Of a stretch of DNA of 64,000 nt, positions 33,304 to 42,300 are shown one piece after another. The translations under genes and the position numbers were made by a program. The notes beneath the pieces were generated by a model that saw only the letters and a program-made list of their open reading frames with translations, ran no database searches and was not told the origin of the DNA. The stretch comes from Bugula neritina (Eukaryota > Animalia > Bryozoa), in NCBI GenBank assembly GCA_964035545.1, contig OZ037771.1, forward strand, positions 1,313,628 to 1,377,627. Direction: 5' to 3'. Each line of letters starts with the position of its first letter. Position 1 is the stretch's first letter.

Positions 33304-36300
33304 TTACTCCAAAAGAGAGAGTATAAACTCGAAGAGTGATTCGCCACACGTCTCATTAGCGTACAACCTGTTGACATACTGAAATATGAGATTCAGCAGG
33401 TCTCCAGTGGTACAGTTCTTCACTTGGTCTACTACCTTCCCAAACTACAAGTTACAGACAACACGGTTAGCTTAGGAGAAAGCATGTGGTGCCAATCCTG
33501 TTTGGAAAAATAAGGGGTAAGAGTGGATAACTCATCCTATCTCTTGACTACAAATCATTTTTTATTCATTGTTGATGCACAATTATGAAATATGAAGCTA
33601 GTGTATCTATAATAATATACTATTTGTATTTATTTAGACTATTTAATAGGATTGGCTGATAACCCAGTTTGTGCCAGTGGATAAGCATGCTCAAAATGAC
33701 AGTCTGAATGCATTACTTCACTGTCTGCGTGTATGATGTCATGAAGGAGTTGAGAGAGTTTATGATGTCATGAAGGAGTTGAGAGAGTTTATGATGTCAT
33801 GAAAGAGTTGAGAGTTTATGATGTCATGAAGGAGTCAGTAAAAATAAAAAGTCTTATTTCAATAAAATGCATTTTGCAAGAGCAGTTTTAAAGTGTTTAA
33901 ATTCATGTTGCTAGTTGTTAGTGTTGGCCTTCATATGTTTGTAATGCTGCATGCATAAAGAATTGTTGCTACTTGTTTTCAAAATCTCTAAAAGTTAATT
34001 TATAAGTTAATAGCATTGAAACTTGGTAAACCTATTTTAGGTTGAAAACTATAAAAAAAATGTCTTCCTCATTTACCTGTTCGTCAGCCAACCTTCTATT
34101 ATTGGAAGGATAGTAAATCATCTTAGGACAGTCACTTTCAGTAGCAGCAATCCACTGCAATAGAGACTTGAGTTGGGGGTCACCACCAAACGCCCCACAA
34201 CCCCAGTTACCCGTAGCAATTGGTTTCGGCCCAAAACCCACCTACAGAACAGAAAATCTTTGAAATTATTTACAAAACAGACAAACACATCAGCATGAAA
34301 TTTATGAATTTAGGTTTTCAAGAATTGTCAATCACCACAGAAACTAATACAGAAAAACCAGTCAAACTACCAGCAAGAAAGAAGCCACACAAGAATAAAG
34401 CTGAGAAAACCCAACCCTTCGAAAGGCAAACAAATCTGCAACCAGGAGAAAGGAACACACTGCTAATAAGAGAAACAAACTAATTGCCAGTAAAACAGTC
34501 TTAAACAATAGACGTAACGAGAAAAGGTGCAGTATTGGTGATGCAGTACAAAGGAGACAAAGATAATGGTTCAAGAAGAAGTATGCAGAGAACATTGGTG
34601 TGTGATGCCATAAGGAAGTTAATGTGATATGATGGTAGATGAGGTGACATCATGGGCAGGTGAGTGGGACGTCATGAGCAGGTGAGTGTGGCATCATGAG
34701 CAGGTGAGTGTGACATCATGATCAGGTGAGTGCGGCATGATGGGCAGGTGAGTGTGATATGATGAGCAGGTGTGTTGACATCAGAAGATAAATATCATGA
34801 GTTTGGTATATCTGCAACATCAGTGTTTACATGTAAGCATGATTACATTCAGTCTTATTGCATCATATAGAATAGTAATGCACTAGCAAGCGAAAAAGTT
34901 TTAAACCATTAAAAGTGAGTCAAGACACAAGATGATATAGTATACATAGTCTACTGAGAATTAGTTGAGCTTGAGTACTAAATGTGACACTTACATTTCT
35001 CTCTTGTCCATCACCGCAAGAACTTAGTTTTGTCTCGTCTTCTTCATTCAGATTAGATAGCTTACTCCTCTTTGGTTGCCGGAATGTTTTCTTCAGTGTT
35101 CTCAGCGAATCATGGAGAATGTTCTCGGCCGTGACCTCACTGAACAGAGCGAGATATTGATGCTGGAGCGGAGAGAAGGGGGGTGTTAGCTCAGAGAGCG
35201 GAGAGAAAGGGGGTGTGGGCTCAGAGTCGTGACCTGTCTCACTCAGGTTCAGTCGGAGTAGACGGCCAGAGTTGGCGAGATTCATGGCGGGAGATTCAGC
35301 CTCACTTTGGCTCTGGTGATCACCAGACTGTGACCTTGACACATCGAGGTGGTTTTGTGAGTTGAGTTCACCTGTTGACAAATCTGAAATAATGCAGCAC
35401 AACGATAGCTGACGTCTTTACACAGCAGCTAGCAGTTGCTCAAAATATGCATAAATAAATCATTATAATAATAATGTAGTATAACGTTCATCAGAGAAAA
35501 TATAATTGTCAAAACAAGTACACACTTGAACTTTTATTTAAAATACAAAAAATAGTAAGTTTAAGCACCTGGTACTAGGAGAGCAGCTTTGGAATCAGGT
35601 TTGACTTTGTCTATGGCTCTACCCCCAGAATGCTGCCTCAACTGATGCCAAAGTGGATCAGACGCTGCCCCGTGACTGGACGAGTGGACTGTCTTAGATC
35701 TGAGGCAGCGTTCATCGCCCGGACCTGTGAAACACACAAACTATGTTAGAGGTAAATGGCTAATAACAACGAAACTTCCTCTGGAAAAGATGAAATCAGA
35801 GCACACTGAAAGGTAGAAACAGCCTTGACCTGCGGCAGCTCTATGAAACTCATTCCGGATATAATCAGAAGGATTGGGAGTCTTTCTGTTGGAGTTTGGA
35901 GACCGAGTTCTAAACAGGACCAAAGGCTCACTACCTCTCCTTGGTACGGGTGTCAGACTATGACGTCTCGCACCACTGGGGGCACTCTGTCTACGCCCGT
36001 AAAATGGTTGTCTACTCGCACTATCTACAAATATTGCATCATGACATTCTAAAGAATATTATTTTTCATTAATAATATTTATTATTTTGTATTTAGAACA
36101 TCAAGTATTATCATATATTTACAATATTTAGTAATACTATTATGTAGTGTAGAAATGTACAATCATTAACCCCCTAGACATACTTTGCCGTACTGTAGGC
36201 CATAACGTAAAATGACAGCCATTTTTAATGTGCTCGAGCTGAAATTTTCAAAGTGCGCTATTGGGCACGATCTATGACACCTCATTGGACACTTATAGCC

Positions 36301-39300: not shown

Positions 39301-42300
39301 TTCAACTAATACTGAAAATTTGTCATGAATTAGCAGCTCATTAGCCTACATTCAGTGAGGTGATACTCTAATTATACGTCAGTGCATTGCATCCCCCTTA
39401 CCAACCCTTAGATAGCCACGTAGATTTGTACCAAAGTGGATATTGTCTCTCTCTGAATATCCGTGCAGCTATGAGCTATGAGTGGTCAACATTAGAGGCG
39501 TAACTAGGTGAAGTGACGTGCTATCTGTTTATTCACAAGACATGCGGTAGACCACAGTGCAGTGTACAACACCTAATCTGCGTTACGGAGATATAACATG
39601 CTGACCTGTGATAATGCGTTACAGAAGACAACTCCTCTTGCTTGCGGTATAGTGTGAAGACGAAATACCAACACTATGAAGGAAAAACTTACCTCACCAA
39701 AGAAGTTTAGCTGATGAAAGCCTATAAATGCCTTGTTGAGTTCACGGAGAATGGCTGGATAAGTGTACTGATCAGAGAATGAGTTGATGGGGAGGGCATC
39801 AATGGCTGTGAGCCTGGTGTCGTATACGCCGATATCTTCGTCAAACTACCATATATATTATATATATGTTATATATAATATATAACATATATATAACATA
39901 TATATGTTATATATATTATATGTTATACATATATGTTATACATATATGTTATATATATATGATATATAACATATATATGTTATATATATATATGTTATAT
40001 ATATATGTTATATATATATATATATATATATATATCTCAATCTGTGGACAGCAGCTGTTTCGGGATTTGTCCCCTCATCAGCACAGAACAGAGTACCATG
40101 GCCCACACCTTCGCAATAGTAAAACTTATAGTTTTACTAAAGCATATTTAAAAGGTGTGTAAACTCAAGCCAGAGTGCTCAAGTGACTCTAGGGGTCACC
40201 TAGGAGTCACGAGCATTGCCAAATGCTAGCAGCTTGAGTTTGTGACCATGGTGAGAGTGCTCAATCATTTAATGTCATTGCTGAGCATTAAATGAGAGCG
40301 TAATATATATATATATATATATATATATATATATATATATGCAATATGCAACAAGATAGAGTACAAGGTGCAATACACAGCAAGATAGAGTACAAGGTGT
40401 AATACACAGCAAGATAGAGTACAAGGTGTAATACACAGCAAGATAGAGTACAAGGTGTAATACACAGCAATAAACTGTGAGAAAACCTATACTAACATCA
40501 GCTTGTTTGGTAGGAGGCGCAGGGCCGTTATATTTCAGTGATGAATCATAACCAGTGCGTCTGCTGTATGTCTGATAACCAAACACTTGTATTGCATCAT
40601 GGCGCCCCATTGGCTCGTTAAACAACATGGCTACTTGCAGCTCTGGAGCTGTGAAAAATCTAATCTCCTCCTGGAAAACAAACACACAGCATGAAGTTGA
40701 TAAGATGAGAGTAGGTGTGGGCAGTGGAAGTGATGAGAGTAGGTGTGGCCAGTGGAAGACATGAGAGTAGGTGTGGCCAGTGGAAGAGATGAGAGTAGGT
40801 GTGGCCAGTGGAAGAGATGAGAGTAGGTGTGGCCAGTGGAAGAGATGAGAGTAGGTGTGGCCAGTGGAAGAGATGAGAGTAGGTGTGGCCAGTGGAAGAG
40901 ATGAGAGTAGGTGTGGCCAGTGAAAGACATGAGAGTAGGTGTGGCCAGTGGAAGACATGAGAGTAGGTGTGGCCAGCATTTTTTAAAGACTCCCAACAAC
41001 TAAAATTCCTGACTTAAACTGATCTAGAAATGAATACTAAGTTTAGAGGGTAACATCCTGGTATGCTACATGAAATATAAGATGAACAACCTGAAGTCTG
41101 CCCCCGGTGAGGGTACCTCCCCCAATTTTCTCATTGGCAAAGTCCACTTCCATAGCTTTTCCAATCTGATCCTCAATGCTCCCTTTATCCAATATCTCTA
41201 GCTCACACAGTCGAGTTCTTTTAGCTCTCCACTCGTCAACTACTAGAGGAATTCCCGTCCCAACCTGTACCCAGTGAATAAACAAATAGAAACTTAGTCT
41301 CGATACCAACTCAGACCAATAGACCTATTCTATGTGGGTCATTTTACTTAAGTTAGTACACACTATATATCTCTAGCTTTTAGCTACTTTTCACAGTTTA
41401 GCTACTATTGTATATGGTTATTGCCCTAGACTAATAAAACATCAACAAATACAACTTAATAATGGAGCTTTTGTTTAAGTTTCTAATACTTCATAACAGG
41501 TCTCAGGTTTACGCGCACACATGGCCAAATACCAACAGCAAATAATGGGTCATAACCTTTGAACTCTGATGAGAACGTACCAATCGGCTGTATGCGAGAT
41601 CCCCTGGAGCAGGCTCATCACGATGCGTAGCCATGAGACTGAAGTAGTTTAAAATCATCTTCAGCTGGGCCTGCACTGGCCTGTAGGTAATCAACATACT
41701 AATTTATTTCGTGAATGCAATGACAAATATTAGAGTTATGTTCTCCACAGCTACGAAGGGACGACAATTCCGCTTAATAATAAAGTTGTTTTTTTTAACA
41801 TAAATTTCAACAGCTAATGACTTCACTTTCTTCAGTAAATTGTTGCTTTAATTTCTAAATGTGCTTTATAGTACAACATTGATTATTGATTGTAATTTTC
41901 TAAAATGTTTAAAATTTATAGATAAGTGACTGCAAAGTATACTAGTTATTATTAAAGTGTATCTACTAGATAAATAAATCCTATACATAACCCAGAACTA
42001 GCTGTTTACACGAGTTGACGGCAAGCTTTTTAAGTTTATGTGACATCACTTCAAAGCAATTTTTTTCCACATGCAAACAGCAACAAATTTATAATTTTAT
42101 TAATATTACCTAAAGCACTTAAACTATAAATACTTCCACTAAACAGTACAAGCTCCGAAACTCTGGGAAAACTTACTTTTTATGTAAAAGGGGGAAGAAA
42201 GTGGTATAGTTGGCATTAATTCCCTTTTTAGTAGTCGTCAGGCAGAGAAACATGGAGGCAAGTGCTATAGTAACGTGTTTGCGCGGCAACCGTACGGTGT

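Follow-up and report, generated by a model that had tools for sequence, protein, structure and literature searches.

A poly(ADP-ribose) glycohydrolase gene of the bryozoan Bugula neritina with a predicted nine-exon insertion in its catalytic domain and candidate docking helices

Removal of poly(ADP-ribose) falls mainly to PARG, and little is known of how this enzyme is regulated. To our knowledge, the regulatory regions of known PARGs lie N-terminal to the catalytic domain and not inside it. In a 64,000-nucleotide stretch of the Bugula neritina genome (contig OZ037771.1, positions 1,313,628 to 1,377,627; hereafter the window, whose own numbering is used throughout), the macro domain of a PARG gene on the minus strand is split between two exons, 39845-39693 and 34241-34077. 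The question raised by this locus is whether the DNA between them belongs to the protein and, if so, what it may do there. We find that nine coding exons very probably lie within a single PARG gene and insert 692 residues into its catalytic domain, a judgement drawn from the sequence and its homologues. In the account that we favour, the inserted loop is regulatory and docks proteins with a dimerization/docking (D/D) domain; we put the probability of this account as a whole at roughly 0.4.

The split macro domain and its nine inserted exons

Four exon-sized open frames of the window match the PARG_cat_C profile (PF05028), all of them above its cut-off of 26.3 bits (exons a to d in Table 1). 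About nine profile positions are absent between the third and the fourth (152 versus 162), yet the two exons are 5.45 kb of DNA apart. This interval holds minus-strand open frames of 115, 116, 276, 69, 105 and 165 codons with 33-42% G+C, for which no Pfam family was matched. An earlier note on this DNA, made from the letters alone, had stated that the two flanking motifs are close together in canonical PARG, and this is borne out. The translations of the flanking exons align to human PARG (4a0d) ending at residue 408 and starting at 419, and the corresponding positions in Tetrahymena PARG (4epp) are 374 and 379; in the solved PARGs, 4-10 residues separate the RELNKA helix from the ATGNWG strand. 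Contig C2 of this genome carries a PARG paralogue in which a single exon encodes RELNKAYSGF, nine further residues and then the second motif.

The splice chain across the interval was drawn first by hand and with a crude dynamic programme and then corrected from homologues, with searches run exon by exon. It consists of nine GT-AG exons (I1 to I9) that total 2,076 nt, or 692 codons, free of stops and in phase 0 at both entry and exit; along the chain, the phases run 0, 1, 1, 1, 0, 0, 1, 1, 1, 0. The insert is 15% serine, and serine, threonine and proline together make up 30%. The earlier note's proposal of nine in-frame exons encoding a Ser/Pro-rich insertion of about 650-700 residues in PARG is therefore upheld by the codon count, by the composition and by the orthologues described below. 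A direct splice from 39693 to 34241 is also in frame and would leave a loop of 13 residues; with the insertion, the loop reaches 13 + 692, or about 705 residues. A second in-frame acceptor, at 38712, would join exon c to I2 without I1. In every lineage, I9 is followed by a conserved donor and contains no stop. It is therefore an internal exon that must be joined to another one, and the conserved exon that comes next is in each case PARG exon d, which follows the I9-like exon in L002, L011, L012, L013 and L015 (our labels for loci in genome and metagenome contigs). Searches of the organism's own 216-Mb genome found the insert exons to be single copy and recovered no paralogue of them; the insertion is therefore neither a transposon nor a recent exon duplication.

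Two public protein models contain the same insertion. An exhaustive HMMER search with I9 gave four cluster representatives, including XP_067948574.1, a Watersipora subatra RefSeq protein of 1,192 residues named 'mucin-4-like'. This protein has PARG_cat_N, PARG_cat_C over profile positions 2-157 (162.9 bits), about 720 residues that belong to no family, and then PIATGNWG.. to its end. The window exons align to it in equal order. When the Watersipora locus was rebuilt, it showed nine insert exons with end phases 1, 1, 1, 0, 0, 1, 1, 1, 0 between phase-0 flanks, which is the pattern of the window, and the counterpart of I1 is a mini exon of 55 nt in the same phase. The second model, KAF6017942.1 ('hypothetical protein EB796_023752'), comes from a draft B. 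neritina genome whose proteins were predicted by AUGUSTUS with transcriptome hints (PMC7576161). It joins I1-I9 to PARG exon d and the last exon. Its I3-I9 and PARG junctions agree with our chain; I1 is entered at a later acceptor (38843), and I5 is ended early by an internal donor. Further species are represented by the metagenome contigs L012 and L013, in which I5-, I6-, I7-, I8- and I9-like exons precede the PARG ATGNWG exon with order and strand unchanged. Word-based searches with I4 (195 codons) and I9 returned only genomic fragments of the sibling species, and a region search with the Watersipora insert recovered only itself. Three candidates (P0012, P0014 and P0017) were rejected as spliced transcripts and are genomic read-through open reading frames. 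In the I9 HMMER search, the insertion family was found only in cheilostome-type bryozoan sequences, and to date this PARG paralogue seems to be confined to cheilostomes.

Several cryptic species go under the name B. neritina, and the divergence of roughly 10% between the window and the draft genome, as well as JGI and Logan contigs, agrees with this. Selection was assessed by comparing the window with this sibling species (L001, L002 and L015; about 9-12% diverged). The ratio of non-synonymous to synonymous changes per site (pN/pS) is 0.39 over the nine insert exons versus 0.23 for the PARG exons. The insert has 59.3 synonymous changes in 474 sites and 73.7 non-synonymous changes in 1,503 sites, where neutrality expects a ratio of about 1:3. 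The lowest values are those of I5 (0.18) and of the C-terminal half of I9, around the last helix (0.08). The Ser/Thr-rich I4 is nearly neutral (0.65-0.72), and between the two species its open reading frames are 79% identical and differ by a single in-frame indel of 30 nt. All splice sites are retained; indels in exons are multiples of three only, and those in introns measure 1, 5, 7, 8, 10, 22 and 73 nt. On these comparisons, the insert exons read as real coding sequence under purifying selection. The insertion also has an in-frame repeat expansion: I3 of the sibling species (about residues 110-190 of KAF6017942.1) carries about ten tandem TSPAVAD units, and the window has one (38200-38170).

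The catalytic signatures of the enzyme are intact in this copy. GGG-X7-QEE is preserved across the inferred junction of exons a and b, a splice common to Watersipora, and the signature of the diphosphate-binding loop is preserved in exon d. The Watersipora orthologue has GGS for GGG before QEE (residues 255-268) and GNWGSGAFNGD at 1100-1112, and its catalytic competence may differ from that of the Bugula copy.

Predicted helical islands and basic sites in the loop

AlphaFold2 was run on the Watersipora insert, and a shallow alignment was supplied from the fragments. Of its 726 residues, 490 have a predicted local distance difference test score (pLDDT) below 50, and seven helices stand out from this background (Table 1). 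The loop is accordingly predicted to be mostly disordered, with a basic RRxS(xP) cluster and with the amphipathic helices A, B and F as isolated islands, and helices C and D, possibly with E, form a predicted hairpin or perhaps a bundle. Searches with two AlphaFold2 models in Foldseek and VIA found generic helical bundles and coiled coils only (E above 0.5; Z at most 5.7), the ESM Atlas had no usable match, and nothing meaningful was found for the insert in Pfam (E up to 10) or by sequence search of the PDB.

Between Bugula, Watersipora, L012 and L013, the conserved islands are the helices, a block of I5 that runs from ..ERRRL[FL]IENN.. to NSI.D.EKL, and the RRxS cluster of I7. Sites 1 and 3 of this cluster, RR[QS]SAP and RR[GV]SEP (both RRxSxP), occur in all four lineages and site 2, RR[HS]SL, in three. 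All five helices that the earlier note had described are where it placed them. Its question of whether they are conserved islands can be answered: A, B and F are conserved in register, and C and D lie in the best-conserved block and probably form a hairpin. The RRQS, RRHS and RRGS sites that it had assigned to one exon at about 35929-35996 do share an exon, but that span is the cluster itself (35995-35930), and the exon extends over 36024-35830.

Table 1. Features of the PARG locus and its surroundings (positions in the window; helices are listed by the exon that encodes them, with pLDDT from the Watersipora model)
Feature	Position or exon	Strand	Description
PARG exon a	41091-41264	-	Ends in first part of GGG-X7-QEE signature; profile 2-50; matches XP_067948574.1 215-253; borders approximate
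PARG exon b	40497-40670	-	Begins EEIRFF, the catalytic Glu-Glu; profile 49-108; tblastn match to XP_067948574.1 255-317; pN/pS 0.14
PARG exon c	39693-39845	-	Profile 113-152; PDB PARG match; strong donor GTAAGT, phase 0
I1	38784-38850	-	67-nt mini exon, phase 0 to 1; 98.5% identical to sibling species, flank with 10-nt indel; used in KAF6017942.1
I2	38517-38654	-	Helix A at 38643-38602; Watersipora keeps the helix as EYAESL..; strict FA-type pattern
I3	38038-38268	-	Helix B at about 38141-38097; splice sites kept in L001; pN/pS 0.32-0.39, helix invariant
I4	37342-37928	-	Ser/Thr-rich linker of 195 codons; helix C begins in its end, ..IDAYAQ; matches XP_067948574.1 547-716
I5	36765-36965	-	Best-conserved island, helices C and D; 55% identical to XP_067948574.1 718-782, intron positions equal; also in L012
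I6	36511-36622	-	Helix E, degenerate in the window; YA/FA-type in the other three lineages
I7	35830-36024	-	RRQS, RRHS and RRGS; SDYIRNEF island
I8	35569-35724	-	..DPLWHQL.. island
I9	34995-35383	-	Helix F at about 35148-35104; donor GTAAGT, phase 0; conserved in four lineages; no exon indel
PARG exon d	34077-34241	-	Diphosphate-binding loop; phase-0 acceptor; profile 162-206; PDB PARG matches
Last PARG exon	33307-33444	-	Ends with stop; pN/pS 0.07
Helix A	I2		pLDDT 66-68, isolated
Helix B	I3		pLDDT 60-62, isolated
Helices C and D	I4/I5		pLDDT 85-90; hairpin, also when folded alone
Helix E	I6		pLDDT about 62-65
Short helix	I8		pLDDT about 61
Helix F	I9		pLDDT 92-93; 44-residue helix
PHD-finger exon	43929-44321	-	Directly upstream of the PARG exons
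Cytochrome P450 gene	28976-29224	-	Downstream of PARG
Minisatellite	38873-39080		PARG intron; 21-nt unit
Minisatellite	36648-36753		PARG intron; 22-nt unit
Minisatellite	34640-34783		PARG intron; 22-nt unit; 73-nt indel versus sibling species
Minisatellite	33732-33835		PARG intron; 29-nt unit
Repeat array	about 40630-41000		Intron between exons a and b; unit roughly 75 nt, estimated from a repeat of about 25 residues in the translation; reads as open frame

Possible kinase anchoring and competing accounts

The helices of type-I A-kinase anchoring proteins (AKAPs), which prefer the type I regulatory subunit (RI) of protein kinase A (PKA), are amphipathic, span 14-18 residues and have F or Y at position 1, a nearly invariant Ala at position 2, and hydrophobic residues at positions 2, 5, 6, 9, 10, 13, 14 and 17 (PMC12083921). 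Such helices occur in smAKAP, AKAP3, SKIP and AKAP220; the last two proteins have two helices each, and in AKAP220 it is the distal one that serves as an example (PMC12083921). In the window, helices A, B and C fit this register with YA, the last of them reading YAQ and SLSEEIV.. on either side of the I4/I5 junction, and F fits it with FS. Watersipora keeps the YA dipeptide in helices A, B and E, and its A, B and F helices are at orthologous positions. The strict [FY]A pattern occurs twice in single exons of the window (three times with the I4/I5 junction) versus 0.008 expected from shuffles, and twice versus 0.011 in Watersipora.

The genome encodes possible partners. It has one RI gene and three genes resembling the type II regulatory subunit (RII), with D/D exons upstream of the exons for cyclic-nucleotide (cNMP) binding. 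These loci are at C5:3449671 (L005, the RI gene), C3:9956798 (L008), C4:22321045 (L004) and C5:12900839 (L006); invertebrates usually have one RI and one RII, and four regulatory-subunit-like genes are more than that. Docking was carried out for helix B and the RI D/D domain of the same genome. With two copies of the domain, helix B scored 0.50 (0.49-0.50 in three runs), and none of three controls exceeded 0.02. At least 80% of contacts are shared between the runs, and the partner has a pLDDT of 62. Of 78 solved complexes, 51 pass the mark used by the tool, as do 2 of 108 mismatched pairs. Scores of 0.60 or less include only 5 of the 78 solved complexes but all 4 passing mismatches (of 180), and the result is therefore graded by the tool as 'weak support'.

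In the favoured account, a surface loop just before the strand that leads to the diphosphate-binding loop would have grown from about 10 to about 705 residues by way of nine coding exons, and would serve as a regulatory and scaffolding module. The helices that follow the type-I 'FA motif' register, A and B with YA and F with FS, would dock a four-helix domain of the D/D type. The leading candidate is PKA RI, and other proteins with an RIIa or DPY-30 fold are possible. The docked kinase, or another basophilic kinase, would phosphorylate the RRxS cluster, possibly making 14-3-3 sites. The insertion is next to the active-site loop of the eraser, and phosphorylation or docking may then tune where this enzyme is localised or how active it is.

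Several observations weigh against this account. None of the Pfam AKAP families is significant, the best being SmAKAP on Watersipora helix B (E 1.2; 10.6 bits with a cut-off of 27), although AKAPs are defined by function and a missing Pfam match leaves that function possible. A looser, generic AKAP pattern is not enriched (2 observed versus 0.92 expected from shuffles). The docking score may show likeness only, since AKAP-D/D complexes have already been solved. Helices C and D are predicted as a hairpin, so they may be structural rather than docking elements, and helix A may pack on helix C in the AlphaFold2 model, since some VIA alignments extend over the two. In helix F the polar face is invariant too, a feature not typical of AKAP helices. 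RRxS, although the PKA consensus, is not confined to that kinase, and RRxSxP suits other basophilic kinases and 14-3-3 proteins as well. Two further points, the phase of the flanking exons and the content of sequencing runs, concern the splicing of the insert and are taken up with the accounts that depend on it.

Three competing accounts question the gene structure itself. Chance open frames, a transposon or a pseudogene within an ordinary intron can practically be dismissed: the intron does contain minisatellites, but the exons are single copy, combine a pN/pS of 0.39 with frame-preserving indels only, and keep their order and phases in Watersipora, so that this account is already contradicted. 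We also give very little credence to a transcript or gene of its own with a start within the PARG intron. Such a gene might be read from KAF6017942.1, which begins with a short intronic exon and is annotated apart from the upstream PARG pieces. However, that first exon has no ATG in the window genome and differs in the sibling species by intron-like indels of 4 and 2 nt, KAF6017942.1 itself continues into PARG exon d, the Watersipora RefSeq model joins all parts, and I9 reaches its conserved donor without a stop in any lineage. The draft annotation does split the locus into four same-strand models (a PHD model; PARG_cat_N with part of PARG_cat_C; PARG_cat_C; the insert with PARG_cat_C). This is over-splitting, not evidence for separate genes, and it leaves no workable macro domain. 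The earlier note had raised the case of two separate genes, and the single-gene structure holds in spite of the draft annotation and agrees with the Watersipora RefSeq model. An account in which the nine exons are a mostly skipped cassette, with canonical PARG (39693 joined to 34241) as the main product and a minor or tissue-specific long form, is improbable in our judgement. In Bugula as in Watersipora, phase 0 is found at the two flanks, so skipping of the whole cassette would yield canonical PARG, and the 13 residues left by the direct join are near the 4-10 of solved PARGs. In addition, only about 5% of the words sampled from a 5.9-kb stretch occur in four presumed RNA runs, a share that could equal just the two PARG exons. 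However, 5% sits at the reporting threshold, both independent annotations contain the insert exons, C2 already encodes a canonical PARG paralogue, and purifying selection together with conservation in four lineages shows that the long form is used.

The last competing account accepts the insertion in PARG and denies the cyclic AMP (cAMP) link, and we regard it as a serious possibility, if one with less than an even chance. The helices would not dock PKA; C, D and E (perhaps with A and F) would form an intramolecular bundle or mediate coiled-coil oligomerisation, or the helices would bind another partner. The RRxS(xP) cluster would serve another basophilic kinase and 14-3-3 proteins, and the loop would regulate or localise PARG. 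The confident C-D hairpin (pLDDT 85-90) and the 44-residue helix F (92-93) are consistent with this, as are a three-helix model of XP_067948574.1 residues 690-812 (predicted template modelling score 0.54) and the generic bundles and coiled coils found by VIA and Foldseek. The lack of an AKAP Pfam family and the grade of the 0.50 docking score point the same way, and sites 1 and 3 fit the 14-3-3 mode-I pattern, RxxSxP. Set against these points, helices A and B stand isolated between long disordered stretches at moderate pLDDT, as docking helices usually do, the docking controls reach only 0.02, and A and B have YA with the full type-I hydrophobic register in both Bugula and Watersipora (PMC12083921).

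The favoured account of one split PARG gene with a D/D-docking loop has to be graded by its parts. D/D-domain docking by the insert helices, taken alone, is possible but somewhat unlikely on the present comparisons. The multivalent PKA or D/D scaffold put forward in the earlier note keeps the rank of a hypothesis: the type-I register of A, B and F and the conserved RRxS sites speak for it, and C and D more probably belong to a hairpin. In its strongest form, this PARG paralogue would be a true multivalent type-I AKAP, in which YA helices hold PKA-RI, the RRxSxP sites are phosphorylated and cAMP gates the removal of poly(ADP-ribose). We consider that form unlikely.

Even without PKA, the locus indicates that the macro fold tolerates a very large insertion beside the diphosphate-binding loop, and it provides a case from nature in which a regulatory loop forms part of a catalytic domain. 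Should PKA regulatory subunits be bound by the YA helices, cAMP signalling would be connected with ADP-ribose turnover through this gene, whose product would be the first AKAP within an ADP-ribose eraser. The gene would then also point to a convergent invertebrate origin of the 'FA motif' and of multi-helix anchoring; type-I-selective and dual-helix AKAPs are now placed at the base of vertebrates (PMC12083921). Among papers with the terms PARG, AKAP and glycohydrolase, judged on title and abstract, none describes a split PARG or a PARG-AKAP link.

Surroundings of the gene and comparison with known systems

Several features around the gene were recorded in passing. Immediately upstream of PARG, and in its orientation, is a PHD-finger exon with a counterpart at L015:5524-6367 in the draft genome. 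It is a separate 212-residue model in the draft annotation, is absent from the Watersipora orthologue, and may be the N-terminus of this PARG. In the two Bugula genomes alike, PARG is followed on its own strand by a cytochrome P450 gene (L015:20217-26851 in the draft), a Gar1 gene is upstream of PARG in the draft genome, and we regard the synteny as conserved. The PARG introns are rich in tandem repeats, with four minisatellites and a longer-unit array (Table 1). Elsewhere in the assembly, small contigs with PARG-, RIIa- and cNMP-binding-like matches (C76:19800-20382, C102:7137-7238, C172:8095-8196, C166, C144, C66, C53, C315 and C121) hold many in-frame TAA and TAG codons, as a ciliate code would give; the assembly therefore probably carries contigs from a ciliate epibiont or contaminant.

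The known systems closest to the proposed docking function are the type-I and multi-helix AKAPs, namely smAKAP, SKIP/SPHKAP, AKAP3/4 and the distal helix of AKAP220 (PMC12083921). The insertion shares with them the helix register, the presence of several helices in disordered protein, and PKA-type sites nearby. It differs in that family homology to them is not detectable, in that its helices are inside a catalytic domain, and in that it is bryozoan and known here from sequence and in-silico docking.

XP_067948574.1 and KAF6017942.1 are much closer relatives and have the same insertion, exon order, phases, helices and RRxS cluster. Compared with the window gene, KAF6017942.1 is without the N-terminal PARG half and part of I5. 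The automatic names of both entries miss the split domain. As the public entries are misnamed or cut into four models, merging and renaming them is warranted.

With canonical PARG (human 4a0d/4b1h; Tetrahymena 4epp; PF05028 and PF20811), the window gene shares the PARG_cat_N and PARG_cat_C matches, the former by way of the orthologue, and the catalytic signatures. Its macro domain is not contiguous, and its loop of about 705 residues contrasts with 4-10 in the solved enzymes and 9 in the C2 paralogue. The long loop is a variant feature of this PARG and not a reason to place the gene outside the family.

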